A DNA stretch of 64,000 nucleotides, from contig OZ025748.1 of NCBI GenBank assembly GCA_964019335.1, positions 1 to 64,000 on the forward strand. Reading direction: 5' to 3'. Made by a program: the position numbers and the translations under genes. The DNA comes from Diplonema japonicum (lineage: Eukaryota; Protista; Euglenozoa: Diplonemea). The notes beneath the pieces are model-generated. The model had not been told where the DNA came from. It ran no database searches and saw only the letters and a program-made list of their open reading frames with translations. Below, piece by piece: positions 3-17,800 of the stretch (position 1 is the first letter of the stretch; the number at the start of each line of letters is the position of its first letter).

Positions 3-165
3 GCGGGTTTGCGGGTTTGCGGGTTTGCGGGTTTGCGGGTTTGCGGGTTTGCGGGTTTGCGGGTTTGCGGGTTTGCGGGTTTGCGGGTTTGCGGGTTTGC
101 GGGTTTGCGGGTTTGCGGGTTTGCGGGTTTGCGGGGGTTTGCGGGGGTTTGCGGGGGTTTGCGGG
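3..165. repeat. Tandem (GCGGGTTT)n array: about 16 octamer units, then 3 GCGGGGGTTT variants; open at the window edge
   Basis: Read directly from the sequence. It abuts the 3' end of the minus-strand CRE-type retrotransposon. Confidence 0.97.
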
Positions 166-3051
166 TATCCCCCTTAGGACACTCGTCCAAGGTCTGGTTC
201 ACCGCAGCGTCAGTCGCCCCTTGTCTCTTCCCATCTGCCTGGGCCTTCGGGTCAAGCCCCTCTCCCTGCCCAGCCCTCTCGCTGGATCCTGTTCCGGCCA
301 TCTCCGTGTCTTCTCCTCCCTGCGAGGCTGCTTCGAGTCCTGCTCCCGCTTTCCCTTGTGTTCCACCCTCCACCGGTTCCGCCTTTCGCTGCTGCTGCAT
401 TCGGGCGTCCAGGTCCTTCTTCGTCTGCTCCAGAAGGGCATCCAGCTGGTGGGCCACCGTGATTGGGGGTCCGCCTCCCTGTCCCTTCACTTCCCTCTCG
501 GACGACTCCTCAGCTTCGGTGGTTTTTTCATTGCCGAAGGAGTCCTCTGTGAGGTCAGTGTTGGATTCAGTGTTGGGTTCGTTGTTCGCTTCCTCGTTGT
601 CCTTTTTTTCCTCTTCGCCGTCCGGTATCGGGGGCCCTGGATCCAACTGTACAGGCCCTTTGACTAACAGCGCCCCTGCTATCGATCTCATCATGGCCGT
701 TGACACCTCTTGGACCACACGCCTGTGTATCGAGACTCTGTCCCCGTGAGCCCGCGCAGCTATGCTCCTGGACAGTTTCTTCGTGAGGTAGACTGCTGCC
801 TCCCCGAACCCCCCCAAAGGTCTCCGTCGCGAAAGGTACAAAGGCCACGCGTGTCTTGGCGAGCTCCGCCTCATACTTCTGGCGCTTGTAGTGTTCCGCC
901 TTCGCCGCTGCGTACCCCGCAGTCTTCGCCGCCTGGTTGACACAAGACTCGTTCCTCGGGTGCACGATGACCACGTCCATAGCCATTGGGCGGGAACCCC
1001 CCACCCCACCTGGGAAGAACACGTCCGCCGGGCGCTGGGACGACCCCGGGATCAGCCCCGTCTTCTCCATCGTTGCGCTCACCCCGGCCCACTGACAGTG
1101 TCTGTGGATGGTCTCCTTCACCCGGTCGTGCCTCGCAATCCTGGCGTTGCCGCATCCCTGGGCATGGTCACCCCATACGTCCATCCCCTCAGTCTTGCAC
1201 CTCGGGTCGTGGCAGCTCTCACCCTGCTTGTAGACCGGAGCCCCCAACCACCACTTGATCAGAGCCCCAAACTCGTTGTCCGACAGCTGGTTGTAGAAGT
1301 CAGGCGTCGCCGTCAACCACGCCCCCGCATAGTGCATTGACTCCGACATCAACCTCGCTCTCGAGCGTGCATCTGCTTTCGCCAAGAGGTCCTCCAGCGC
1401 CTTCTCATCAAGCACCCTAGAGAGCCACCTCTGGCTGCAGATGTGGGGGGCCTTGGCCACCATGTCGGGTGTAATCTGCATGCCGCCCTTCGTCCTGTTG
1501 AACCACTCGAGCCAGCTCCCCCATACACCCCCTTCCAGCCCATGTTCGTATTTGGGATCCAGCTCCTTGCACAGCTTCATCGTCGACGCCCTCGAAGCCA
1601 TGTTGGCCGCGCGCAGGTGCTCCTGGCAGCTCCTCATCCCAAGCCCACCGACTTTTACGGACAGTTTCGCCTGCTGCCATTCTTTCGACCCGTTCTCGAA
1701 CTGCATGCCGCACACCTTCGCCATCGTCTTCCGCACCATCTCGTCGAACCTGTGCATGACCCCTCCCACATGCGAGTCTGGGACCACTCTCATGTAAAAC
1801 ACCAGTTTGCTGTATGAGCTGCAATACCGGAGAAGTGTGTACCCTGTCTGCCTCCCCACCTTGGTCAGCATGTCGAAGTTCTCTTCCAGCGCGCCCAAGC
1901 GTTTGTTCAGAAAGGCTTGCGTGTACTCCGGCGATCCTATCGGCGCCCCCAGGAGCATGAAGTTCCTCTCTTTGTGGAAATTCTCTTCTGTCAGGCCATC
2001 GAAGCCTGTGTCCTCCACTGTCTGGGGGAGGTCGCCACTAACCCATATGAGCTCGCACTTCTCCGGGTTTCACTTTCAGCCCTATCATTCCGCTCAGCTC
2101 ACACAAGATGTTGTACGCCTTTCTCACTTCATCCACATTCCCCACAAGGACGCCATCGTCCAGGTAGAACTGGAGGATGTCCAGGTTGCAGTCTTCACTT
2201 ATCTTGTTCACCAGGGGTTGGATGGCCAGAGAGAACAGCAGCGGTCCCATCGGGTCCCCCTGTTGCACCCCTTCCTGGGACTTAATCACCTTTCCGTTGT
2301 AGTATAATTGGGAGGGCACCCTGTAGCACCAATCGGCCCACGCATACAGCCCCGACGCTTGCTCATAGGCCTGTGAGCACAGCTGCCTCCGACAAACACT
2401 GTTGAAGGCGTTGGCGTAGTCGATCTTGAGGATCACCTTGTTTTCCTGCTTGTTGCCCCGTTCCCTGTCCACATATTGCCTGATGGTGTGTATAGCCGCC
2501 TCCATTCCAGCAGGGACCGATACCCCCACCTGGCCGCCTTTCCTCAGGTACGAAGAGGCCACTTCCGGAGCGATCTTCTTCACAAGGGATTTCCCCACCA
2601 GCCGACGCAGCACATCCCCAACGGCTATGGGCCGCACGTCCCTGTCGTTCTTCTTGAGGGCCACAAGGTTCGCCCCTGCCATCAGCGGAGCCACCTCCCT
2701 AGGGGCCGTGCCTCTAGCTAATGCGTTGACTGCCCTCGTCACCGACATCAAACAGCCTTGAGACTCAAAAGCTCCGTCCACCGCGTCCCTGATGTGCTGG
2801 GCTCTCAGACCAGTCGGTCCCGCAGCAGTCCCCCTCGGGAAGTCCCTGATTGCGTCCAGCACTTCTTCTGGCAAGACTTCTACCGCTTCCTTCGTCTTCG
2901 CCGGGTTGTCCCATTGGGGGTGTAGTGGCTCTGGATGTTTGCTCTGCAGCGCTCTCCAGCAATCCTCATTGTCTTCCGCCAGCCCCTGGGCTACAAGCGC
3001 CGCGTTTCCTGCTGTGCTCATCATCCAAATCCATGGGGGGAGGGTCACCAC
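166..3051 (-). mobile_element. CRE/SLACS-clade non-LTR retrotransposon pol region (reverse transcriptase, CCHC-like knuckle, restriction-like endonuclease) with two +1 homopolymer frameshifts
   Basis: RT motifs: RPIAVGDVLRRLVGK, KIDYANAFNSV, GVQQGDPMGPLLFSLAI, FYLDDG, LLGAPIG, GGLG. Knuckle: CHDPRC...DHAQGC followed by RHD. RLE motifs: RPADVF, MDVVIVHP, KRQKY, FVPFATETFGG. Frameshifts at about 2068-2070 and 809-815. Confidence 0.92.
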
Positions 3052-3078
3052 CTCCTTGCAACGCGTCCCCTGCCAGCG

Positions 3079-5280
3079 TCAAGTCCGCAAAGGGGTCCAG
3101 GTGTTCGGCCTGAAAGAGCTTATCCTCCGTCTCAGCTCGTTCCTTCGCCGCTTGCTTGGCGTCCTCCTTCTTTTTTCTGCGTCTTGAGCTTCTAGGCGGG
3201 CCCAAGTACACCGGCAGGTAGTGACCTCTCGATCCGCGTCTTGTCTTGCGAGCTCCCCGGCGGACCATTCATCCCCTCGGGGCCCCACCTGTACCCTTGA
3301 CCTGCGGGTGGTCCTCCTGTCGCTCCCCGGCAACACTGCAGCATGCAGGAAGGAGGGGGCCATCCCGATGCCCACCCCCAGCACCTGCCTCACCCCTGGG
3401 ATCAGCAAGAGGGAGAACAGGGCGACCCAGGCCCACACCCCCAGGTGCTCCCATCTCATCCCTTCCTTGCTGTGTCCCGTCCGTCTGCGGTGCCTCCTTG
3501 CACCGGTTGCAGCCCCAGGTGCCGGGATTCTGGGTGCCAGGGGTTGGGCTCCAGGCGTTCCCACCTCGGTCAGCTTCAGCCCCATTGCAGGGTCATCTGG
3601 CTTCTGTTCCAGGGCGGCCTCGTGTTCCTCTCTGCGGGCCCTCCTCCTCCCTTCTTTCCTCGCACGACGGTGCCTTTTCTTCTCCTGTCTGGCAGCCTCC
3701 CTCGCGCCCTCCCTCGCCTTGGTCCTCTTCTCCCGACGCCTCTGAAGGGCCGTTTCGCTCCTGTGCCTCCTCCTGTTCTTCTTCCTCTTGGGCGCTGGCT
3801 TAGGTTCCCTGCCACCCATGGCAATCCAGGGGGCTCTTTTCTGTCTTCTCACAAGGGTGTGCAGTGGTGCTCTCACGTCGCTCACAGCCTCCGCCCCAAC
3901 CACACCTTGGCGGGCGGTGGGGGTGGGTGCTGGGTCCCCCTGGTTGTTTGAAAAGAAAAAAGGCTCCTCCTTGTTTGTTTTTTTTTTTTCTTTCCCTTCC
4001 ACCCTCAAAAAAAGCCCCCGGCCCTTGGGGACCAGGGTGTACACCTCCGTAGAGGGTCCAGAAAAAATGGGGGGCAGAGAGGGAGGAGCACTACCTTCTC
4101 TCGGGCGTGCTGTCTCTCCCTCTGCCTTTTTTTCCTCTGAAGAGGGTCTGTTTTTCACCTCCGTGGAGGGTCCCTCTGGGGAGGGCTCTAAAAATGAAAA
4201 AGGGGGGGACAAATGGGGGGGAGGAACACTACCCTCTCTCGGGGGTGCCACCTCTTCCCCTCTCTCTCTATTTTCCTCCGAAGAGGGTCTGTTTTCCGTG
4301 GAGGGTTCCTCCAAAGAGGGCTCTAAAAATGAAAAAGGGGGGGACAAATGGGGGGGAGGAACACTACCCTCTTTTGGGAGCGCTGCCTCTTCCCCTCTCT
4401 CTCCATTTTCCTCCGAAGAGGGTCTGTTTTTTACCTCCGTGGAGGGTTCTAAAAAAAAAGGGGGGGGTTCATTTGTTAGCCCAGGGGGTGGGTCTTCCTG
4501 GGGGGGTATGTGGGTGAGCTCGGGGCCAACCGCACGCAGGGTGATCGACACCCTGACACCAGTGGACACCCCTGACGGGATGTGGTGTGTCCACTGGTGT
4601 CTCGCTTCGCCTTCCAACAGTGCCCATGAGAAGGGGGGCACCAGGTACCTCGCTACCCTGTCCCCCTTCCTCATGACCATTGTGGTCTCAGCCCCGTACG
4701 ACAAGACTAGGATGACCAGTCCCAGTCTTGCATCGTCCTTGTGGGCAGCAATCCCACAACCAGGTCTGTACTTATTCACAAGTACCTGGTTGGGGACCAC
4801 CTTGAGCCCTGTGGTGGCAGCCACCTCCCTCACCCACCCCTTTGCCTCCCCTGGGATGCCAGTGGTGGGGCACACCTCGGCGTCCATCCCCTCCCACCAG
4901 TGCCCATGCTGGAGCGTCTCCCTCCCCGTGTTCCCTGACAGGGCCTCCCACTTCCCAGACAGCAGAGCTTCTGGGAAGGTGGGGGCAGCACCTGTCTTCA
5001 ACCTGGGGGGGTGCTCACCATCTTTCAGTATCCACCCTTCCCCCTTTTTCTTCTTTTTTTTTTCCTCTTCAACTATGGCAGGGTCGGCTGCAGAGGTCGG
5101 GCTTGCAGCAGGGGCGGCTGCAGCGGTCTCAGTTGCAGCAGGGGTGGCTGCAGCGTTCAAGGCGGCAGGGGCAGCTGTGGCGATTGTGGTTGTGTCGGTC
5201 GTGGCTGTGGCAGGGGCGGCTGCAGCGTTTGGGGCGGCAGGGTCGGCTGCAGCGTTCAGTGTGGCTGGGGCTGCTGCCAC
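3079..5280 (-). CDS. Retroelement-associated ORF: Ala/Thr-rich N-terminus, AlkB-type 2OG-Fe(II) dioxygenase domain (about 4525-5035), three tandem Pro/Glu repeats, Arg/Lys-rich tract, hydrophobic segment
   Basis: PNQVLVNKYRPGCGIAAHKDD...LSYG...EGEARHQWTHHIP...RVSITLR matches the AlkB NxY, HxD, distal H and RxSxTxR signatures. Start codon uncertain. Confidence 0.85.
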   Translation of the reverse strand: MAAAPATLNAAADPAAPNAAAAPATATTDTTTIATAAPAALNAAATPAATETAAAAPAASPTSAADPAIVEEEKKKKKKGEGWILKDGEHPPRLKTGAAPTFPEALLSGKWEALSGNTGRETLQHGHWWEGMDAEVCPTTGIPGEAKGWVREVAATTGLKVVPNQVLVNKYRPGCGIAAHKDDARLGLVILVLSYGAETTMVMRKGDRVARYLVPPFSWALLEGEARHQWTHHIPSGVSTGVRVSITLRAVGPELTHIPPQEDPPPGLTNEPPPFFLEPSTEVKNRPSSEENGERGEEAALPKEGSVPPPHLSPPFSFLEPSLEEPSTENRPSSEENRERGEEVAPPREGSVPPPHLSPPFSFLEPSPEGPSTEVKNRPSSEEKKAEGETARPREGSAPPSLPPIFSGPSTEVYTLVPKGRGLFLRVEGKEKKKTNKEEPFFFSNNQGDPAPTPTARQGVVGAEAVSDVRAPLHTLVRRQKRAPWIAMGGREPKPAPKRKKNRRRHRSETALQRRREKRTKAREGAREAARQEKKRHRRARKEGRRRARREEHEAALEQKPDDPAMGLKLTEVGTPGAQPLAPRIPAPGAATGARRHRRRTGHSKEGMRWEHLGVWAWVALFSLLLIPGVRQVLGVGIGMAPSFLHAAVLPGSDRRTTRRSRVQVGPRGDEWSAGELARQDADREVTTCRCTWARLEAQDAEKRRRTPSKRRRNELRRRISSFRPNTWTPLRT
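4045..4465 (-). repeat. About three imperfect tandem units of roughly 120 bp encoding PPPHLSPPFSFLEPS..PSTEVKNRPSSEE
   Basis: Repeated blocks visible in both DNA and translation; also present in copy 2 (about 7580-8060). Confidence 0.85.
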
Positions 5281-5582
5281 AGTCGTGCTTGCGGCCAGGG
5301 TGGCTGTGGCTGTAGGTCAAAACCGTGGTCTCTACTTGTGATTTTTGGGTTTGTGGACCTATCTACTCTGGTTCACTGCAGCTGCAATAATATGTACAAG
5401 AGGGTGTGTTTACCTGTGTAAACAGATCAGTTCCTTAATCGTATTTAAAAAAAGAAGGGGGGGGCAATATATTTTTACAGGTTGGTAATGGGTGAGTGTG
5501 TTTATGTTTTGAACAACTGTGTAAAAACAGTGCTCAGATATCAACCTGTGTAAACAGATGAGTTCCTTCCTTTCCAAGGTGC

Positions 5583-6935
5583 TCAGCTTAGAACATCCAA
5601 TGACATTCTGCATCTGGCTTTTGACAAAGTCTTTGAAATCACTTTAAAGTGATGCTCCATTGGTGCCTCAGAGGTTAAACTGCACCCAAGCATCAGTGCA
5701 AAGACAGCTAGTGTGTGAAGCATGCCAAGCTTTGAGTTCCAAAAAGCAAAAAAGTTTAATGTTGGGCTGCAACCTATTGCTAGGTACTCATCAATCTGCA
5801 TCCCCAGCTGCTGCTGATCTGCCATCATTTTTCACAATTCAGCAAACAGGACAAGGTGATCCAGCAGTGTGTTTCACAGTGTGACCAAGTCTGAAAGTTC
5901 TCCAGTTGATACTTTGGGATTCAGAAAAGTATACAACCTGATACCAAGAAACAACATGTTTCATTTGGCCCTTGCTTTGTAAACCTTGATGACTTCAGAG
6001 ACTGTGGTAGCATTGAGTGACCCCTCCTGGGATTCAAGGAATTTCTTCAAGCTCTTTCCAACAACGAAAATTCCATATGCCACCATAGCCATGCCAGATG
6101 TGTCCCCTTGCACGATCTGTTGCAACTGCAAAGGGTGTGGAAATCTGTATTGTGAATTCCAGCTCTGCCCCAAACCCTGCCTCTATGCCTGGAAAGAATT
6201 CTAGGAGATCAAGGATGGACTTCATTGTTTCGAATTCCATCTGGTCTTCGTATACGTCTTTTCATGGCATACTCCATGTGAGACCTGTACAGTGTGGAGT
6301 GCCAACTGCCCAGCTTTCAAGGTCCATCTCTTGATCAGTGTTTTCACTTTGGCTCTAATGTTAGCCAGTTGCTCAATCTTGAAGATGTCACCAAGGGCAA
6401 GTTGCATGGAATGTGCAACACAATGATATGCTAGGACACCTTTGCAACTCAGCATTGTAGTTGTATTGTTCAAAAGCTGGTTCATTCCAGCAGAGAGCTC
6501 AGTGTTGTTGGAGTTGGTGTCAGAGTTGGAGTCAAGGTCAGTGACACCTGAAGTGTCACTACTCTAATGTTGCTGCTAACATCCTCAGTGTCATCAAGTG
6601 AGAGGTTGAGTTCCACTTTGAAGTCAATGTATCTTTGCAAGCACTGCTTGCATCGCACTAGCATTATCAGCACATACTGAAAATACATGTACAACATGGC
6701 TCTGAAGTTCCAGTATCATTTCACGGATGTGGGATGAAATGACAGCAGCAGTGGCACTCACTTTTGTAAGGTCTATCATCTTGCAAAAGTAGCTGTTCTT
6801 CCCATCTGACATACTAATGCCAAGGATGCTTTGATGGTTTATTGTGGTCCCATCAACAAGTCTGTCTCCTGTCCAAGTTCAACAACACAGCTTTGCATGT
6901 GTTTCCTGTTGATTCCTTTCAATTTGCCTGCATTG
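5583..6935 (-). pseudogene. Decayed hAT-superfamily DDE transposase
   Basis: Motifs in the expected order across shifted frames: LVDGTT (first D, about 6853), CADNASAM (second D), HCVAHSMQL (CxxH), TRWNS, and C-terminal SEAPME..F...LSKARCRMS (E / dimerisation domain). Multiple stops and frameshifts. A near-identical 25-bp direct repeat lies at about 5412 and 5544. Confidence 0.8.
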
Positions 6936-6944
6936 AAATTAAAT

Positions 6945-7280
6945 ACTCACGTAGGGGCCAAGCTCCAATCTGGTAGAACCATGACTTCCCATCCAGCTGC
7001 ACAATGTACTCGTTTTTCACCACCATCTCCTTCACATCAGCAACAGATGGCAGATCAACTGATGGAGGGTCCCTCTGTGCATTGCCCACCAGTGATGCAT
7101 CCACCAGCCTCCTCTTCCCACTTGGCTTTGGAACTGTGAATGCTTTCACCACGTTTTTCACCTTCTCTTCTGTCCCTTGTTTGTTGGGGTTCCACAGATT
7201 CCACTGCCTGTGTAGTGCACAGTGTGTCTGGTTCGACGAGCATGCCACAGCACACGTTCCACAGAGGTTCACCTTCATGA
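6945..7280 (-). pseudogene. RT fragment of DIRS/Ngaro/TATE-like (tyrosine-recombinase retrotransposon) type
   Basis: KAFTVPKPSGKRRLVDA...LPSV...IVQLDGKSWFYQIG resembles the early RT motifs of LTR/YR-type elements, not CRE. Truncated against the hAT remnant. Confidence 0.65.
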
Positions 7281-8825
7281 CCTCTCAATCTGTGTCTTGT
7301 CTTCTTCAGCTTTACCAGTCCGAATCTCTGGGTCAGGCCAGCACCAGCTTTCCCCACCATCACTTCCAACATGGCCCAGAGTGACATCAGCCCCCCCTAT
7401 CCAAACTGAAGTGCTTCCCACCAGGGTGCCCCCTACCACTAGCCAAGTGAGCTCCCCAGCAGACCATTCATCCCCTTGGGCCCCACCTGTACCCTTGACC
7501 TGTGGTCCTCTGTTGCTCCCCAGCCTCTTCCACAACACTGCAGCATGCAGGAAGGAGGGGGCCATCCCGATGCCATGGGTGGAGGGTCCAGAAAAAAGGG
7601 GGGGCAGAGAGGGAGGAGCACTACCTTCTCTTGGGTGTGCTGTCTCTCCCTCTGCCTTTTTTTCCTCTGGGTCTGTTTTTCACCTCCATGGAGGGTCCCT
7701 CTGGAGAGGGCCCTATAAAAGAAAAAGGGGGGGACAAATGGGGGGGAGGAACACTACCCTCTCTCAGGAGTGCCACCTCTTCCCCTCTCTCTTTTTTCCT
7801 CTGAAGAGGGTCTGTTTTTTACCTCCGTGGAGGGTCCCTCTGGAGAGGGCTCTAAAAATGAAAAAGGGGGGGACAAATGGGGGGGAGGAGCACCACCCTC
7901 TCTCAGGAGTGCCACCTCTTCCCCTTTCTCTCTATTTTCCTCCAAAGAGGGTCTGTTTTCCTCTGAAGAGGGTTCTAAAAAAAAAAGGGGGTGGGTGGGG
8001 CACTATCCTCTCTTGGGAGTGCCACCCCCCCCTTGCCCACAAAAAAGGGGATCTAAAAAAGGGGGTTCATCTGTTAACCCAGGGGATGGGTCTTCCTGGG
8101 GTGTGTGGGTGAGCTTGGGGCCTACCACACGCAGGGTGATTGACACCCTGACACCAGTGGACATCCTGGATGGGATGTGGTGTGTCCACTGGTGTCTCAC
8201 TTCACCTTCCAACAATGCCCATGAGAAGGGGGGCACCAGGTACCTCACCACCCTGTCCCCCTTCCTCATGACCATTGTGGTCTTGGCTCCGTACGAGAGG
8301 ACTAGGACAATCAGTCCTAGCCTTGCATCATCCTTGTGGGCGGCAATCCCACAACCAGACTTGTACTTGTTGACAAGTACCTGGTTGGGGACCACCTTGA
8401 GACCTGTGGCAGCAGCCACCTCCCTCACCCACCCCTCCACCCCCCCTGGGATTGCTGTGGTGGGGCACACCTTGGCATTCGTCCCCTCCCACTGGTACCC
8501 GTATTGGAGGGTCTCCCTCCCTGACAGGGCCTCCCACTTTCCTGAAAGCAGGGCTTTCAGGAAGGCAGGGGCTGGGCCCGTCCTCAACCCAGGAGGGTGT
8601 TCACCATACACCAGTACCCACCCCTTTTTTTCTCCCTCTTTTCTTCCCTCTTCAACAATAGCAGGGTCGGCTGCAGGGGTCATGGTCACAGTGGTTGTGG
8701 CTGCAGCAGGGGTGGCTGTGGCAGTCTCAGTTGTGGCAATCAGGGTGGCAGGGTTGGCTGCAGCGTTCAGGGTGGCTGGGGTGGCTGTGGCTGTAGCAGT
8801 GGTGGTCTCTGCTAGTGATTTTTTT
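7278..8825 (-). mobile_element. Second, more decayed copy of the AlkB-containing module (AlkB domain about 8125-8625, ORF 8003-8689)
   Basis: Colinear homology with 3222-3372 and 4045-5346. NKY, HKD, WTHH and RVSITLR motifs retained. Confidence 0.88.
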
Positions 8826-9189
8826 ATTTTATTATTTTTTTGTGGTAAAAAGGTGGTAGAATGATATAAATCTTAAATTTTCGGAAGAAAGTTGATTCCT
8901 TGAAGAGAAAAAAAATTCGATAAGGTGACCACAGCTGGGAAACCTACTTCAAGGAGCATTTTGCTTATCATCACCCAAAATTAGGCCAAAATTCCAAAAA
9001 TACCATTCTAAAATGAAGCTTGATTTTGTGATTTTCAGGTGGCCATTTAGACCCTAAGGAAAATTCCTAAAGTGATTTTTGAAAGATTTTTTTCAGTCCA
9101 AGTGGGGTCAAAACTTTCCATTGGCTGTTCAAAATTCCATTTTCAAGACCAAATTGGGTGTTCAAAAAAAAATTTTTTTTTTGCCCTCC

Positions 9190-9580
9190 CAGTGTTGTTA
9201 TGAGAATGAGTTGCCCCCCAGAAATTTTTGAATTTTTACTTACTTTTTACTTCAGAATATAGTTTAGAGATGTGTATTCCACCTAAACACCTTTCTGAAC
9301 TTTTTGGTTTGCAGAAATGGGTTTTTAAGGTGTTTTTAATATAAATTTCATGATTTCTGGCTTTTTCCAGAAAAAAGATTTTGGGGTCAAAAATGGCCAA
9401 AGTGACCCCAAGTTTGGGGTCCCCTGGGAAAAAAAAATTTTTTTTTGGCCAAAAATTTCCAAAAAAGTCTGTTTTGAGGGTGCTATATGAGTGAGGGTCC
9501 CTAGAAAAAAAAATTTTTTTTTGCCCCCCCACCCCCCCAGCCCCCCCCACCCCCCCAGGTTTTTTCCCATAACAACACTG
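9190..9580. mobile_element. hAT-like non-autonomous element (MITE)
   Basis: TIR pair CAGTGTTGTTATG(A/G)GAA at 9190-9206 and 9564-9580; CAGTG start is typical of hAT. No matching 8-bp TSD seen. Confidence 0.6.
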
Positions 9581-10290
9581 GTCCTTGTTGTCTCTGATGG
9601 TCTGGTGTTGTTGGGTCGTTGCTGTCCAGGAGGAAAGCGATTCTCGTCTTGATGATCCTTTCTATAAGCTTGCAGAGGTTGCTTGTGAGGTTGATGGGGC
9701 AGTAGCTCCCCTTTTCCGTTGGGTCCTTTGTTGGCTTCTGGAGCGGCTTCGTTAGTGCCTTGTGCCACTTTGGTAGGACGGTTGTGCTGTTCCATGAGAG
9801 GTTAATTGTGTGGAGGAGGGCTGCTCTGGCCATTGGCCCTAATTGCAGCAACATCTCATTGTGGATGAGGTCGATTCCAGGGCTTTTGTGCATCTTCAGT
9901 TGTGACATTGCATGTGCCAACTCGTGCTCGTTAAATTTCATTTCCGATGCACTTGTTGCCTCTGGCGTCGCATCTGTTGTTGCTTTCTCAGACCGCCCGT
10001 TACAGGTCTTACACACATCTGCATAATGTTTCCCGAGTACGTTGGCTTGCTCCATTGCTGCGAAGATCGCTTTGTTGCCTTCAATCAGCTTGCAGCTCCT
10101 GTTCTTTCCTTCGACCCTTCCATCCATCACCTTGATGCGGCTGTAAATTCGTCCCAGCCCCTCCTGTGTCATCCCTTCCACCTCCTTCTTCCACAGTGCT
10201 TCCTTCCGCTCGTCCACTAGTTTTTGCACCTTCTCCCTTTGCTCCTTCGCCTTCTTGACCTCTTTGTCAGTCACCTCTTCCTTCTTCCTC
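9581..10290 (-). pseudogene. Non-LTR (ingi/I/R1-like) RT N-terminal fragment
   Basis: ELAHAMSQLKMHKSPGIDLIHNEML...W...KPLQKP.KDP....SYCPINLTSNLCKLIERII...QQG, cut off at the QxG motif by the MITE TIR. Confidence 0.85.
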
Positions 10291-11217
10291 TGCAATTGTT
10301 GTGGGAATGAGGCACCCAAAGCCAAACACAAGAGAGCACACCAAAGTGGCTGTCCCTGCTGTTTCCCCCCCAAGAAACTACAGGGAAAATGTCTTATCAG
10401 GATAGACATAACGAAGACCAAGAAGAACAAAATAGCAATTCCTTTGCACGAAAGTGACACCTATCGTCAGTCCAGAGTATCTACTCCATCTTTTCTATTT
10501 TTTTTCTGTGCCCATGCTACTGTGGAACAATTCCAACAGTAAGGCCAGCCTTATTTCGTGTGACATGGTCAAGCCTCATGCCTCTGACCAATTAGCACTG
10601 TGTGGTGTCTTGTTGGCTATTAAACCAACCAGAAAGCAGAAGTCCTGCTAAAAGTTCCCCTTTACACACTACATCACAAACTAGTGCAGCACAGTCGTTG
10701 CCACTGAGCTTCTCAAGAACCTCTGTGGTGGGTGTCCTGATCGCCAGTCAATTGGCCTCATTTTGGGGTTTTTTTTTTTGAAACGATGCCATATCTTTTT
10801 CAATGTAACCAGTAGGCCCCAATGCACACAACTGCATGGCATTGCGACAGAGGGACTCGTGCTGGAAACAGCTGAGTTACAGCTAATGATGGTGGAGATG
10901 GTAACTTGCAACTCGCCTTTGCACAAAAGAAGACAATGGACTTCAGTGTTCACTTGTGGAACAGGCCCTTCGAGAAGGGGTGTTTGCTCAAGCCGCGGTC
11001 ACTGAGGTGGTACTACGACAACGGTTTGAGGCAACAGTACCTCCAGCGGCTGTTCCCACACGTCATCCGGCTCTCTGCCCTTCACTGGGGCACAACACTT
11101 CAGGCGTCCTGCCACACACCGCAGGTACCCTTAAATACCCTTTTTTTTCTTTTTTTTTCTGCTTCGGTTTTTTCCCTCCTGCTTCTTCTCTGTGCAACAA
11201 TCACACAGGTAACATGC

Positions 11218-13200
11218 ATGGCAAGCGTTCTGGTGTATGCAGTAGCAAGCTCAATAGCAATTAGTTATGGTAGTGAAGTGTCTCTGGGATATAACAAGTG
11301 TTTGAACCACCAGGGATGGTGTCAATGCCCTGGGCAGAGTGCGCTGACAGCATTGTTCAGGTCTTCCTGTGAGCTACTCGAGTGCATTGACAATATGAGG
11401 TGTGCCGACCTAGCAGGTGGTGCTACAAGGACAGGGTGCATGACTGTTGATACTGTCTGGGACTCAACAGAGTGGTTGTCATGTCCTGCAAATACCTTTA
11501 TCACAGGCATTTACCGCGGGACATGTAATTCGTTGAATTGTATTGATAAATTGGAATGCTGCACCTTTGATGTCCCTAGCAACACACGCGTAGTCACAGG
11601 AACCGAAGACTGGATGACCTGCTTTGACAACAGAGCATGGTGTGTCATACCTCCCGATTCCTTTATATCAGGATTTTATCGTTCTTCGTGTTCAAGCATA
11701 AGGTGCTTGGAAAAGGTGTCCGTAGGACGCTTCATTGACCCTTCGCAGGCTCCACCCACTCTCGCACCCCCAACCCCCGCACCACGCACGCCGTTCCCTT
11801 CTACATCTGCACCAGCTACACCTGCGCCTTTCACGCCTTCACCTTCTACGATTACTCCGGATACATCTTCTCCCGATACATCAGCTCCTTGGACAACTGT
11901 ACCTTCAACCTCAGCACCCTTGACACTTCATCCCGTCACCCTTCCTCTCACAACAGCACCTATCACTGCGTCGCCTTCAATGCCATCAGTATTGCCTGCC
12001 TCTGTAGAACCTGTGGCTTCTCCAAATGCTGTTCAATCCACTCCACCAGCGCCTGTGCAAACATCTGTAGGCATGGATACTGCTGGGAGCATCGCATCAG
12101 GTGCCTCCCTGCTTGGAAACCCTGGTGCGGCTGCAGCAGCTTCGCGCCTCGTTCTTATTAAAGAGGGATGCCATGATGCAGCAACGAGGTTCCCTCCTCC
12201 CTTGCACCCGACACGCTTCACGGTACAGAGTAGTGAGGCAGCAGGAGCCGTTCTGGGGAATATAGGTATTGTTGTGGCTATGACGGCGCTCTGGACCGCA
12301 GTGGCCTACGCAGCAACGTATGCAGCACCGCAATGGTTCGAAGGCATCGATCTGTTGGGATGGCTGAGGTTGCCAACAGTACCGCTTGTCTTAATTCAAA
12401 CACTGTACCAGGGGACGGCTTTGGGCGCGGTAGAGCTTGTGATTCACCCCGAGTCCGTCGGACAATGGATGCTGGGAGCGGTTGCCTTAGTGATGTGCTC
12501 GTGTGTTCCAGTCGCTGTGTTCGTGGTCACGGTGCATGGTGTACCTGAAAAAGCAAGACTGGCTTTTGATACTCAATGCAGCGGTGTGGTACGGGGGTTC
12601 TTACTGGGTAACGGGGAATGGGTTAGCTTGCGTAAGACACACCACTGGGTAAACAGATACACCTCGGTGATAAGGCCTTGGCGGCAAGAGGTGGCGTGGT
12701 TCAGCACAGTGGAATTTGTATCAATGCTAGCACTGGCCTTCATTGGGTCAGTGCGTGCAGACACATCTGTGGAGTGCGGTCACATAAAGGGGAGCATGGC
12801 TTTGGTGTCCTCGGCAACAGGTTTTGCCGAGGGCTTGATGTGGCCGCATGCCAAGCAGCGGGATAGCGCATTTGACTTCATCACGTTGAGCTTGCAAGCA
12901 ATGGGACTGTTCTTGATGGCAATTGGGTACTACTGTGGGGTCTCGAGCAGCCACTCTCTCTTCTCCACATCTCAAGACATATTGTTTGCAGCCATTGTGG
13001 TGGTCCTTATCCGAGTAGGCTTTGACATAATCTCAGAAGTGTATGTCCTGGTGACGGGGAGGAGAAAGCGTCTCCAGAACCTGGAGTGGAACAAGGTACC
13101 TTTCTTCGTAACCCCTCTTTTGCTGCTGCCGTTCCCCGAGCCAACAGCACCTTCTGCACAGGCAGAAGACGGCGACGCATTAGATAGGTTCGTACTCTAG
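11218..13200 (+). CDS. Predicted surface protein: signal peptide, three Cys/Trp-rich repeats, Pro/Thr/Ser stalk, multipass membrane domain; 3' exon structure uncertain
   Basis: ATG at 11218 in ORF 10906-13200. Repeats of the form W..C....FITG.YR..C..L.CI....C. Stalk APPTLAPPTPAP. Seven or more hydrophobic helices. Probable intron at 13096-13161. Confidence 0.75.
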   Translation: MASVLVYAVASSIAISYGSEVSLGYNKCLNHQGWCQCPGQSALTALFRSSCELLECIDNMRCADLAGGATRTGCMTVDTVWDSTEWLSCPANTFITGIYRGTCNSLNCIDKLECCTFDVPSNTRVVTGTEDWMTCFDNRAWCVIPPDSFISGFYRSSCSSIRCLEKVSVGRFIDPSQAPPTLAPPTPAPRTPFPSTSAPATPAPFTPSPSTITPDTSSPDTSAPWTTVPSTSAPLTLHPVTLPLTTAPITASPSMPSVLPASVEPVASPNAVQSTPPAPVQTSVGMDTAGSIASGASLLGNPGAAAAASRLVLIKEGCHDAATRFPPPLHPTRFTVQSSEAAGAVLGNIGIVVAMTALWTAVAYAATYAAPQWFEGIDLLGWLRLPTVPLVLIQTLYQGTALGAVELVIHPESVGQWMLGAVALVMCSCVPVAVFVVTVHGVPEKARLAFDTQCSGVVRGFLLGNGEWVSLRKTHHWVNRYTSVIRPWRQEVAWFSTVEFVSMLALAFIGSVRADTSVECGHIKGSMALVSSATGFAEGLMWPHAKQRDSAFDFITLSLQAMGLFLMAIGYYCGVSSSHSLFSTSQDILFAAIVVVLIRVGFDIISEVYVLVTGRRKRLQNLEWNKVPFFVTPLLLLPFPEPTAPSAQAEDGDALDRFVL

Positions 13201-14883: not shown

Positions 14884-17800
14884 ATGTCGTTTGACTTTGT
14901 GGCGCTGGGTGATGTAGATAAAATCTTAGATGGCCTAGACAGCGCAGGGAAGCAAGGAAAGGGAAGGTCCGCCCACGAGGAAGAAGCGTCCAGAAAAGAG
15001 AAAGAACCTGCGGCGTTCACAGCCAAACCGTGGTCGCCCAGAAGCCCCGTCATCCAGCCCACACTACAGTACACAACATACCAAAACTATGCTGAAAAGC
15101 TTCTTCAGCCTAAAAAGCTAGGCACACCGTTAGTTCAGCGGCTCGTTTCGGCCACAGGCACGGGGTGTTGCTACGTTGTGCAATCGAGAGACCCTCGTGA
15201 ACGCGACAAGAACATCAAAGGGAAGGGTGGCGTTTGGAGCACCAACACAGCACGAGAGAAAAGCGCTGAATGCACACTTCAAATTAACCAAAAGCTGCAC
15301 TGCATCACACCTCCCAAAGACGGTGGGTATGAACAGGGGGCGAAGCTCTTCTACGATGCAAAGGTGCATGTCCTCACTGACAACGCAGTGCCAACTATCA
15401 CCACCTGCGACATCCTCGGGGGACAGCACCCACAGACAGGAATGAGCGCCATCAAGACTGTCCCTTGCTTCGACGGTACTGAGGTTATTCAAGGCGAGGG
15501 CCCCAAGGGCGTCACATTACATAAACAGAGCTTCACCATCGACGGAAGGCACATAGCACCCTTCATCAAGTTGGTGTTTAAAGGCAAGCGGTCGGACTTC
15601 GCCCCCGCGGCCAGCACCCACCGCATAGTGTTCCTCACCATCGTTAGAGGGTCCACCTACCATACCGTGCTTCCGGAGAAACCAAAATCCGTTCCTGAGC
15701 CTTTTCTGCAGCTCACGCCGCAGAAGCCTACTTTAGATATGGCCTTCACCCCTCGCGAGAGCCCTGCGCTCAAGCCAGTGACCCCAAGCAGAACGGCTCA
15801 GCAAGGAACGCAAAAAACGCCACTGAAACCTACTCCCCTGCGGCTCAATCCCGACACATCTTTCGATCCCCACCAGCGTGCCATTGCAGCAGTGCACTCT
15901 GCACACGCACGGTACCGCGAGAAGAGTAAGTCCGTGTCGCCTTTTCACTCACAACACACCGAGTCCGACCTTGGTGTCGCTACACCGGAACGTGTTTCTG
16001 ATTCCAGTCACAGTCCGGACCCGGCACCTCACATCCTTGAAGGCACCTTTGAGAACATGGCTGACGATTTGGGATATAACTTGGAGCACTTCGAACCTAC
16101 CTACCCTAGCGAACAGGATGGTGTGCCTGAGCACAGATACATGGAACCCCATAGCGAGATATATATACCTGTGCAGCCACCCCAGGCCCAGCCCCACCCC
16201 CAACAAGAGCACAGCTACTATCAGCAGAATCAAAAGCTGCAAGAGCATCACCCCGAGAATGCCGAGGCGCACCACCACCACCACCAGCATCTACAACACC
16301 AAAACCAGCATCTTCACAAACGACAAAAAGAGAGCGAAGAAGAGCACGTTCAGCTACAGCAGGAAGAACACCTAAAATACAAGCAGCTACAACAGCAACA
16401 GCAACAGCAACAGCAACAACAACAGCAACAATTGCGGCAACAGCAAGAACAAGAAGAACAACAACTACAACAACTGCAACAACAACAACAACAACAGCAA
16501 CAACAACGGCAACAACAACAACAACAGCAACAACACCACCGACATCCGCAACCTCGGCCTCTACCGCAGCCACATCAACTTCCACAACCCCTGCACGACC
16601 AGCCGCGTCGCTACGAGCCGTCACCCTCTCCCACTCAAGATATTAAAAACATCTTCGGGCACCCTACGCAGTCAAAACAAGCAGAACATGACACACGCTG
16701 TGATGCGGAGCGTTATGAGCACCAGAGTCCATCTAGAGCCAGTCCCGTGGGCCGTGTGATGACATCACGTCAGAGGGAGGAACAGATACAGGATGTAGAA
16801 AGAGAGTTGCAAAAACTGCAGCAACTGGCGTCGGCTGCAGAAAGTGCTTTCACGAGTGTAGCACATTCTCCGCCTAAAAGCTGTGAACGCCCACCCACCG
16901 TGCCGATGACGAATAGATCACACAGGAATGGTCAGCACGATGGATCCTCTCCCTCGGCGCCGTCAGTTAGGGCTAGCCCTCGCGTCAATTCCTACAGCGC
17001 CTCAACTCCCAAAACCCCGCGCAGAAGCTACAGCCTGCCAAGTCCTAGTCCTGAGACACAGATGCTGCAGCAACAAATTGCAAGTTTGCAAAAGCAGCTC
17101 ACCGACCAGCAACAGATGTTGCAACAGCAACAACATCAAGTACAGCCACAGCAACTGCTACCACAGCAGCAACTACCACAACAGCAGCAACCGCAACTAC
17201 AACAGCCGCAAGAGTATCATAACGTAGGCAGTGCGACCCCGAGCACAATAGGGATACCCACAAGCCGCAGCGTCTCACCTGCATTTTCACATCACTTCGT
17301 CCCAATGGCCATGCCTGTGACGAGTGGCATGGGAGTGCATAGTATGGGCGTGCCCCTTGCACCTGTGACACCCATCCTAGCACCTATGCCAAATGAAGGT
17401 GCGGAACACTTCGACTACCGCAAACACACCCCGGGTGTGCCAAAGGAGGTTGCTGAGCTGAAGGACCAAATGGCACAACAAGACCAATTCCTAAAAATAA
17501 CGAGAGAACAGCTGAAAAAGCAAGAGGAAGACACAAACATCCTATTTGTGCGACAGGTATAATACGAGCGTCATGCCACAGCACAAACAGGTGATGCAGC
17601 AAGAGGAAGCAAAGCGGCAGCGCAAGAAGGATGATGTACGACAAAAACAGTACCAAGGAAAGCTGGCAGAGCTGCATGGGAGGTATGACGAACGGATAAT
17701 AATAACAAATACAGGGTGACTGAGCTCATACCTGCTGTGCCTATGTCGGCGACAGAACCCGTGAAGCAACAGGTATTGTCACCAACAGCAGCTTACACTA

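Follow-up and report, generated by a model that had tools for sequence, protein, structure and literature searches.

The first 64 kb of contig C101 of the Diplonema japonicum genome (here the window) begins at a chromosome end, and positions 166-5346, where an AlkB-type dioxygenase frame lies next to a reverse transcriptase (RT), are decayed and form the outermost portion of a stack in which copies of one retrotransposon family stand head to tail. Across the genome searched (62.5 Mb in 132 contigs), AlkB is a conserved and selected module of these elements, which are retrotransposons that lack long terminal repeats (non-LTR elements) and have a restriction-like endonuclease (RLE); it is neither a nested host gene nor a product of misassembly. 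A first-pass annotation, made from the window alone, had suggested a retroelement that carries its own AlkB, and this holds well beyond the window: AlkB shares one frame with RT and RLE at at least nine loci, in three lineages, and in Diplonema papillatum.

Intact elements are about 9.6-10.7 kb long and code for one polyprotein of ~2,800-2,900 aa, counted from the first ATG. Its N-terminal half has a short basic N terminus, the AlkB-type dioxygenase, a proline-rich/basic linker, one or more zinc fingers, and an OTU cysteine protease domain, which is followed in the C-terminal half by a zinc finger, the RT, the RLE, and a long acidic C terminus. The window copy was aligned by blastn to chromosome-end copies on other contigs, with C9, C16, and C39 as intact references, and the open frames at four loci were translated and then scanned with Pfam. 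Open frames of 2,700-3,005 aa run through the AlkB match at at least nine loci, and in proteins of 2,884-3,005 aa Pfam finds only 2OG-FeII_Oxy_2, OTU, and RVT_1, in that order. This one-frame AlkB-OTU-RVT_1 arrangement is present in three lineages, whose AlkBs are 80%, 65%, and 51% identical to that of the window. AlkB scores 39-51 bits in the three intact lineages (cut-off 31.2), OTU (PF02338) 42-60 bits in intact copies (cut-off 23.3), and RVT_1 54-69 bits, with R2 proteins as its best solved relatives (E 6e-8) and 1,482 homologues of RT-RLE length at 30-46% identity. Lineages B, C, and D, and D. papillatum as well, retain the catalytic Cys and His boxes of OTU (D-G-[ND]-C and H-Y). The RLE, which was assigned by motif inspection and not by a profile, has the motifs C-x4-C...H-x3-C, RHD, (R/K)PAD, and D-V-x-V in all lineages. 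Zinc-finger-like Cys/His clusters lie on both sides of OTU, and the initial suggestion that AlkB takes the place of the zinc fingers is thus not borne out: intact copies carry zinc fingers and OTU, and AlkB is an addition. The region that separates AlkB from the zinc fingers also contains long hydrophobic stretches in lineages A and B and in D. papillatum (residues ~720-830 in the C9 frame, ~620-660 in P0023), which are not obvious in lineage C and may be membrane-spanning segments.

The genome-wide distribution of these elements points to the same association. The tallies that follow come from tblastn-type searches and are lower bounds. AlkB lies upstream on the same strand in 45 of the 63 RT copies, with a modal spacing of 3.7-4.1 kb, a count that the first-pass annotation had proposed; the other 18 look like 5'-truncated copies. 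On C99 there are three tandem 6-kb units whose open frames would start within the OTU region. All RTs in the genome that are related at E <=1e-10 belong to AlkB-bearing lineages. Of the 118 AlkB matches, nearly all fall in the outer ~10 kb of contigs, with those at left ends on the minus strand and those at right ends on the plus strand, and the 3' end of the element faces the chromosome end. The copy population is that of RLE non-LTR elements, with 5' truncations, no LTRs, and defined 3' ends; these 3' ends are lineage-specific, and no terminal repeats of the element itself were seen. A 3,003-nt contig from an independent sequencing run spans linker, zinc finger, OTU, and RT without the deletion found in the window. 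Misassembly is ruled out by the recurrence of the layout at many chromosome ends and in this independent contig, and chance nesting is ruled out at the level of the family by the co-occurrence and the single open frames.

Full copies open with a 39-nt sequence ending CAGTTTCTGTACTTTATTG, and the ATG follows ~150 nt beyond. We take this 39-nt head to be the host spliced leader, by its likeness to the kinetoplastid leader; a 19-mer from it has 217 genomic occurrences, some of them heading elements and many others lying internally. Several chromosome ends illustrate how copies adjoin one another. At C9:9,900-10,700 the leader of a full distal copy starts within a few bases of the break of an older proximal copy, which is eroded in its 3' untranslated region (UTR), at the right end of C16 a 5'-truncated piece of one lineage has been added after the 3' end of another, and C24:1-30,000 holds a 10,659-bp tandem array with ~230 nt extra before each leader.

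The window copy, on the minus strand, consists of three pieces. A young RT and RLE segment (166..3012; identified by blastn, Pfam RVT_1, and motif positions) is followed by a 235-bp linker piece (3013..3247), which by alignment sits just upstream of the zinc fingers in intact copies, and by an older 5' fragment cut at both ends (3248..5346), which is 96.9% identical in alignment to C39-type copies. The older fragment contains a basic region (3248-3900), proline-rich repeats (3900-4480), and the AlkB-type 2OG-Fe(II) dioxygenase domain (4480..5052; Pfam core 4534-4935). As first described, the 733-aa minus-strand open reading frame (ORF) at 3079-5280 contains a complete AlkB domain: aa 116-249 match Pfam 2OG-FeII_Oxy_2 with 46.9 bits against a cut-off of 31.2, and all of the catalytic motifs can be placed (NxY at 4768-4779, HxD at 4732-4743, the distal His at 4582-4593, and RVSITLR at 4534-4554). 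The domain is ~95% identical to the nearest copies elsewhere in the genome, which amounts to roughly nine replacements. The co-oriented RT-RLE placed 3' of AlkB is likewise confirmed, with RVT_1 at 53.9 bits in the ORF at 2038-3051 (RT motifs at 2152-2634) and, 3' of the RT, the RLE at 963-1214 (CCHC knuckle at 1152-1214, RHD at 1119-1133, RPAD at 1020-1034, and D-V-V-I-V at 963-980). A 517-aa open frame (3788-5341, plus strand) runs antisense to the AlkB frame, as others do at the second AlkB copy in the window (7770-8864, plus strand) and at intact copies; the GC-rich composition of the sense frame probably accounts for it.

The pol had also been described as near-intact; the alignments speak against this, and the 733-aa ORF is not a native gene. 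The copy begins ~370 nt inside the element and is thus without the spliced-leader head, the 5' UTR, the ATG, and ~58 codons; a search for the spliced leader across the whole window found none. Alignment to intact copies reveals a 142-bp deletion at 3247/3248, because of which the final ~55 residues of the 733-aa frame are out-of-frame read-through, and a 1,481-bp deletion at 3012/3013, with which the zinc fingers and all of OTU are lost. The RT-RLE segment at 166-3012 is 99.3% identical to intact copies, and relative to contigs of other runs it has frame-shifting one-base insertions near 2063 and 809. At its 3' side the element lacks ~2.9 kb, and the terminal repeat joins directly at 165/166. 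The 28-bp gap between the AlkB and RT ORFs is present as described, but it arises from these deletions and other lesions and is not the native layout; the juxtaposition of an AlkB ORF and a pol in the window is an artefact of decay.

The two halves of the window copy differ in age. The AlkB half is ~3% diverged from its sister copies and the RT half 0.7%, and their mutation spectra differ as well: 25 of the 26 private changes in 4300-5315 are CpG transitions (C>T or G>A), which affect 23% of the CpG bases, as are 46 of the 52 in a second AlkB-bearing fragment (7720-8807; 40% of CpG bases), compared with none of the 15 in the young RT-RLE segment (165-3012). This footprint on old copies looks like 5-methylcytosine deamination of silenced subtelomeric copies. 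The simplest reading of the locus is an older, 3'-eroded proximal fragment (3248-5346) together with a younger, 5'-truncated, and internally deleted distal copy (166-3247), so that two insertions may have taken place. The younger fragment broke at its outer end, which the terminal repeat then capped.

We consider the chances about even that the AlkB frame and the RT-RLE at this locus are two separate insertions that only seem to form one element. Besides the differences in age and mutation spectrum, such nesting is suggested by the junctions at 3012/3013 and 3247/3248, which are unique in the genome (in ~40 other copies the 235-bp piece matches alone, with different flanks on both sides), and by other chromosome ends at which a distal copy is joined directly to a 3'-eroded proximal copy. 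However, later partial gene conversion of one copy would give an identical picture, and both pieces come from one family whose intact members hold AlkB and RT in a single frame, so that chance nesting would explain the local junction only, and not the association. A unique junction, which the first-pass annotation had named as the mark of chance nesting or misassembly, is thus found here, and the local picture falls with it, but the association in the family stands.

The chromosome end itself is formed by an 8-bp repeat, (GGGTTTGC)n, read at the left contig end (1..165, plus strand), of which the three units nearest the element are 10-bp variants. The same repeat is present with the same polarity at other contig ends (a 32-mer of it matches 5,568 times genome-wide) and is very deep in four public runs, and a genome-wide search for TTAGGG x4 found none. 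As (GGGTTTGC)n reads 5' to 3' inward at left ends, with its complement at right ends, the strand that ends 3' at the tip is C-rich; canonical telomeres have the opposite polarity. In one deep run the repeat is joined to at least 10 different internal element positions, as if breaks were healed by repeat addition. A nanopore artefact was considered as the source of the repeat and rejected, as the assembly is from HiFi reads and the repeat is deep in four runs. A literal search of papers for the 8-mer gave no matches, and the genome note for the HiFi-based D. japonicum assembly does not mention telomeres, transposons, or AlkB (PMC13598402).

Selection on AlkB is evident among the copies. Pairwise ratios of nonsynonymous to synonymous divergence (dN/dS) are 0.20-0.38, with a synonymous excess at Fisher p 5e-7 to 5e-12. 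Five sequences from four lineages show no variation at N93, Y95, H104, D106, H156, R167, or R173 (the NxY, HxD, distal His, and RxSxTxR motifs), and these residues are also present in D. papillatum. Between lineages B and C, conservation is highest in AlkB, with amino acid identity of 70%, as compared with 54% in RT, 40% in RLE, and 32% in OTU. The elements are mosaics: lineages A and B have different AlkB regions and near-identical downstream parts.

These data make it very improbable that AlkB arose by recent duplication of a host ALKBH and decays neutrally as a passenger. The genome does hold ~16 host AlkB-like loci, at internal chromosome positions, from which such a duplicate could derive, but the best of them are only 31-34% identical over ~90 aa (E 1e-6 or worse), the dN/dS values are well under 1, and the domain, catalytic residues included, has been kept through divergence to 38% identity between species. 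The element-borne AlkBs moreover form their own clade, and the nearest look-alike clusters in language-model comparisons, which provide a lead only, are small AlkBs of giant viruses and phages.

A counterpart is in D. papillatum. KAJ9442719.1 (2,635 aa, annotated as 'SLACS 132 kDa protein, partial') has AlkB at 290-380, OTU at 1047-1128, and RVT_1 at 1510-1736, with the same domain spacing as in the D. japonicum elements. Word-indexed protein searches with the AlkB domain alone, and with the AlkB region in the 2,884-aa protein, gave no matches, and the D. papillatum models were found by an exhaustive profile search that covered 1.84 billion representative proteins; among the representative matches they are the only long proteins of the AlkB-OTU-RT type. 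The ten element-borne AlkBs of both species form an exclusive clade among the 157 best relatives (SH-aLRT 82), and this clade, together with the 38% identity between the species, fits one old acquisition of AlkB. Two further D. papillatum proteins, KAJ9446222.1 and KAJ9439924.1, are element-borne AlkB frames annotated as 'tRNA (carboxymethyluridine(34)-5-O)-methyltransferase'. In the genome paper on D. papillatum, 'SLACS reverse transcriptases' and 'a dozen AlkB-type genes' appear separately, and no connection is drawn. Misnamed element AlkBs are probably among that dozen, and they thus probably inflate the host AlkB count that is used in the paper to argue for dynamic methylation.

The assignment of the domain to PF13532 is supported by the profile score, the Fe(II) triad HxD...H, and the NxY and RxxxxxR motifs that bind 2OG. 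An AlphaFold model of the window AlkB, of moderate confidence (pLDDT 71.8, pTM 0.73), has a predicted double-stranded beta-helix AlkB fold, and Foldseek matches it to E. coli AlkB, ALKBH6, and ALKBH2 (E 4e-9; TM 0.55-0.65), with ALKBH8 and ALKBH3 also matching. The exhaustive profile search gave no match better than 1e-24, the best being unnamed metagenome proteins of 170-240 aa. Assignment as an ALKBH8 ortholog does not hold, since Pfam finds neither an RNA recognition motif (RRM) nor a Trm9-like methyltransferase domain in the 2,884-3,005-aa proteins. Direct origin from a plant virus was likewise considered and is rejected, with identity of at most 24%. We note that the metagenome relatives include an AlkB-OTU fusion (P0112, 556 aa), and the pairing therefore exists also outside retroelements and plant viruses; other metagenome fusions join AlkB to an mRNA cap guanine-N7 methyltransferase (P0034, 646 aa) and to NADAR (P0069, 628 aa).

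Taking locus, family, and domain together, we moderately favor a joint explanation in which a decayed stack at a chromosome end is made of elements with a built-in AlkB module that acts in cis on element RNA or cDNA. The element mRNA would be trans-spliced like host mRNAs, and target-primed reverse transcription would proceed where the terminal repeat is nicked in its G-rich strand, primed on the RNA 3' end; such a nick would account for the observed orientation of the elements. AlkB, travelling in the same polyprotein, would act in cis on the ~10-kb RNA template or the cDNA and oxidatively remove base alkylation, either RT-stalling lesions of the 1-methyladenine/3-methylcytosine (m1A/m3C) type or a silencing mark such as N6-methyladenine (m6A). 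OTU would either cut the polyprotein or remove ubiquitin. As the nearest solved relative is ALKBH8, which hydroxylates a tRNA base, and not a classic repair AlkB, we infer rather than observe demethylation of the element's own RNA or cDNA.

Several points count against this explanation. In searches of the profile against the PDB, the nearest solved relatives are the tRNA-hydroxylase domain of ALKBH8 (56 bits, E 2.9e-14) and then the Schizosaccharomyces pombe histone dioxygenase Ofd2 (37 bits), and ALKBH3 (28 bits), ALKBH2 (23 bits), and E. coli AlkB (19 bits) are far below ALKBH8, with ALKBH6 at 25 bits and ALKBH5 not significant. The D. papillatum AlkB has Q at the second Asp of the D. japonicum HxDD. 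The conservation of AlkB between lineages is partly due to more recent exchange of the 5' module, since synonymous divergence (dS) between lineages B and C is 0.87 in AlkB and 1.69 in RT. The tree of 157 domains leaves out the D. japonicum host AlkB loci, the public runs compared are contigs of unrecorded kind, none of them recorded as RNA, and the window copy is dead and has no bearing on present activity at the locus.

The profile scores would also suit an ALKBH8- or Ofd2-like hydroxylase that acts on tRNA, on other host RNA, or on protein, for example chromatin at chromosome ends, and that does not demethylate the nucleic acid of the element itself. The NCBI pipeline named D. papillatum models after ALKBH8, in line with the lead of ALKBH8 and Ofd2 over ALKBH3, ALKBH2, and E. 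coli AlkB. We nonetheless regard such a hydroxylase as unlikely, as the element proteins lack the defining RRM and methyltransferase domains of ALKBH8 and the fold search puts E. coli AlkB, ALKBH6, and ALKBH2 jointly on top. ALKBH2 and ALKBH3 carry an HxDD motif, and the D. japonicum lineages have it too. To our knowledge, viral AlkBs of tested activity all act on RNA methylation. The same is true of the other polymerase-linked AlkBs of tested activity, including that of an orchid retrotransposon (PMC9289625).

The CpG decay raises a further candidate role, in which AlkB repairs 3-methylcytosine that is left as a side product of a host cytosine methyltransferase on heavily methylated element copies or on their transcripts. 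The CpG-transition footprint on old copies is extreme (23-40% of CpG bases) and as expected from 5-methylcytosine deamination, DNA methyltransferase (DNMT) homologues are reported in D. papillatum (PMC10161547), and DNMTs make 3-methylcytosine off target and co-evolve with ALKB2 (reviewed in PMC9246332). However, the element AlkB is not of the ALKB2 type, and the tie between CpG decay and AlkB is one that we infer; we therefore judge this role to be decidedly unlikely. The preferred explanation, action in cis on element RNA or cDNA, also has a bolder form, in which a long interspersed nuclear element (LINE) independently assembled the AlkB-OTU module of plant viruses, needs it to copy a 10-kb trans-spliced RNA, forms a structural part of chromosome ends with the reversed repeat polarity, and is functionally linked to diplonemid end maintenance; we raise this tentatively and think it doubtful.

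If RNA or cDNA of the element is indeed the substrate of AlkB, methylation or alkylation of bases would limit retrotransposition strongly enough for a LINE to carry an eraser, in parallel to plant RNA viruses and one orchid Gypsy lineage. With many young copies in a cultured protist, it would also offer a tractable system in which to test, beyond animals and plants, whether retroelements are controlled epitranscriptomically or by alkylation.

Other features of the window lie further inward. A second, older AlkB fragment of the same family (7177..8807, minus strand; AlkB at 8003-8689) is ~92% identical to C9-type copies and has internal deletions; it adjoins an unrelated retroelement fragment with an RT-like peptide (6940..7176, minus strand; no Pfam match). 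A second AlkB-RT fusion at 6945-8825 was considered and rejected, since the junction at 7176/7177 is unique and its two sides occur only separately elsewhere, one on C114, C91, C66, and C82 and the other in ~33 element copies. Pfam found no matches in the neighboring ORFs at 5583-5828, 6222-6485, 6919-7278, 9501-10460, 10906-13200, and 14884-17562. Among these are an N-terminal fragment of a LINE-like RT (9501-10460, minus strand), a 764-aa repeat protein that is rich in Cys and hydrophobic in its C-terminal half (10906-13200, plus strand), and an 892-aa glutamine-rich protein (14884-17562, plus strand).

Comparison with known systems places these elements close to, and apart from, several groups. 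Like the CRE group (SLACS, CRE1/2, and CZAR), they live in a euglenozoan host, are associated with the spliced leader, and have a single large pol in which a CCHC knuckle and a PD-(D/E)xK-type endonuclease come after the RT, and the D. papillatum homologues were automatically annotated as 'SLACS 132 kDa protein'. CRE-group elements interrupt spliced-leader RNA genes at a fixed site, whereas these elements start with a complete 39-nt leader and sit at chromosome ends; their proteins are ~2.5 times longer, and we know of no AlkB or OTU in CRE-group elements. The CRE-clade label given in the first-pass annotation is thus not retained, as the copies are not in spliced-leader genes but lie at chromosome ends beside the 8-bp repeat or older copies. 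MoTeR of Magnaporthe and FoTeR of Fusarium are also RLE non-LTR elements in or next to telomere repeats (PMC7367193, PMC12857005), but their hosts are fungi, and the parts of these reports that we draw on describe no AlkB or OTU.

The first-pass annotation knew of no description of AlkB in RLE non-LTR elements, and a literature search found no paper on AlkB, or on AlkB with OTU, in a non-LTR element. There is, however, a precedent in an LTR retrotransposon, the Ty3/Gypsy AlkB of the orchid Phalaenopsis, which demethylates m6A in vitro and has a proposed role against host RNA-level control (PMC9289625). Both are retrotransposons with a fixed AlkB-family dioxygenase, but the orchid element is a plant LTR element that has its AlkB, which resembles plant RNA demethylases closely, in an additional ORF, whereas the diplonemid element is non-LTR, with an ALKBH8- or viral-like AlkB that is fused into the polyprotein and paired with OTU. 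Human ALKBH8 (PDB 3THP/3THT) shares the GY..Y pre-motif, HxD, the His, and the Arg pair with the element AlkB, which lacks the RRM, the methyltransferase, and the insertion before the last Arg motif of ALKBH8. The same order of domains, AlkB and then OTU upstream of a polymerase in one polyprotein, is found in group 2 replicases of the Flexiviridae (PMC544882). These are RNA viruses with methyltransferase, helicase, and RNA-dependent RNA polymerase domains, and their AlkBs are only 13-24% identical in structural alignments, because of which the likeness is probably convergent. The recurrence of AlkB-OTU in unrelated polymerase polyproteins points to a putative functional coupling of the two domains. 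Published work thus already covers an LTR retrotransposon with AlkB and viral replicases with AlkB-OTU, and what appears to be new here is AlkB-OTU in the polyprotein of a LINE.

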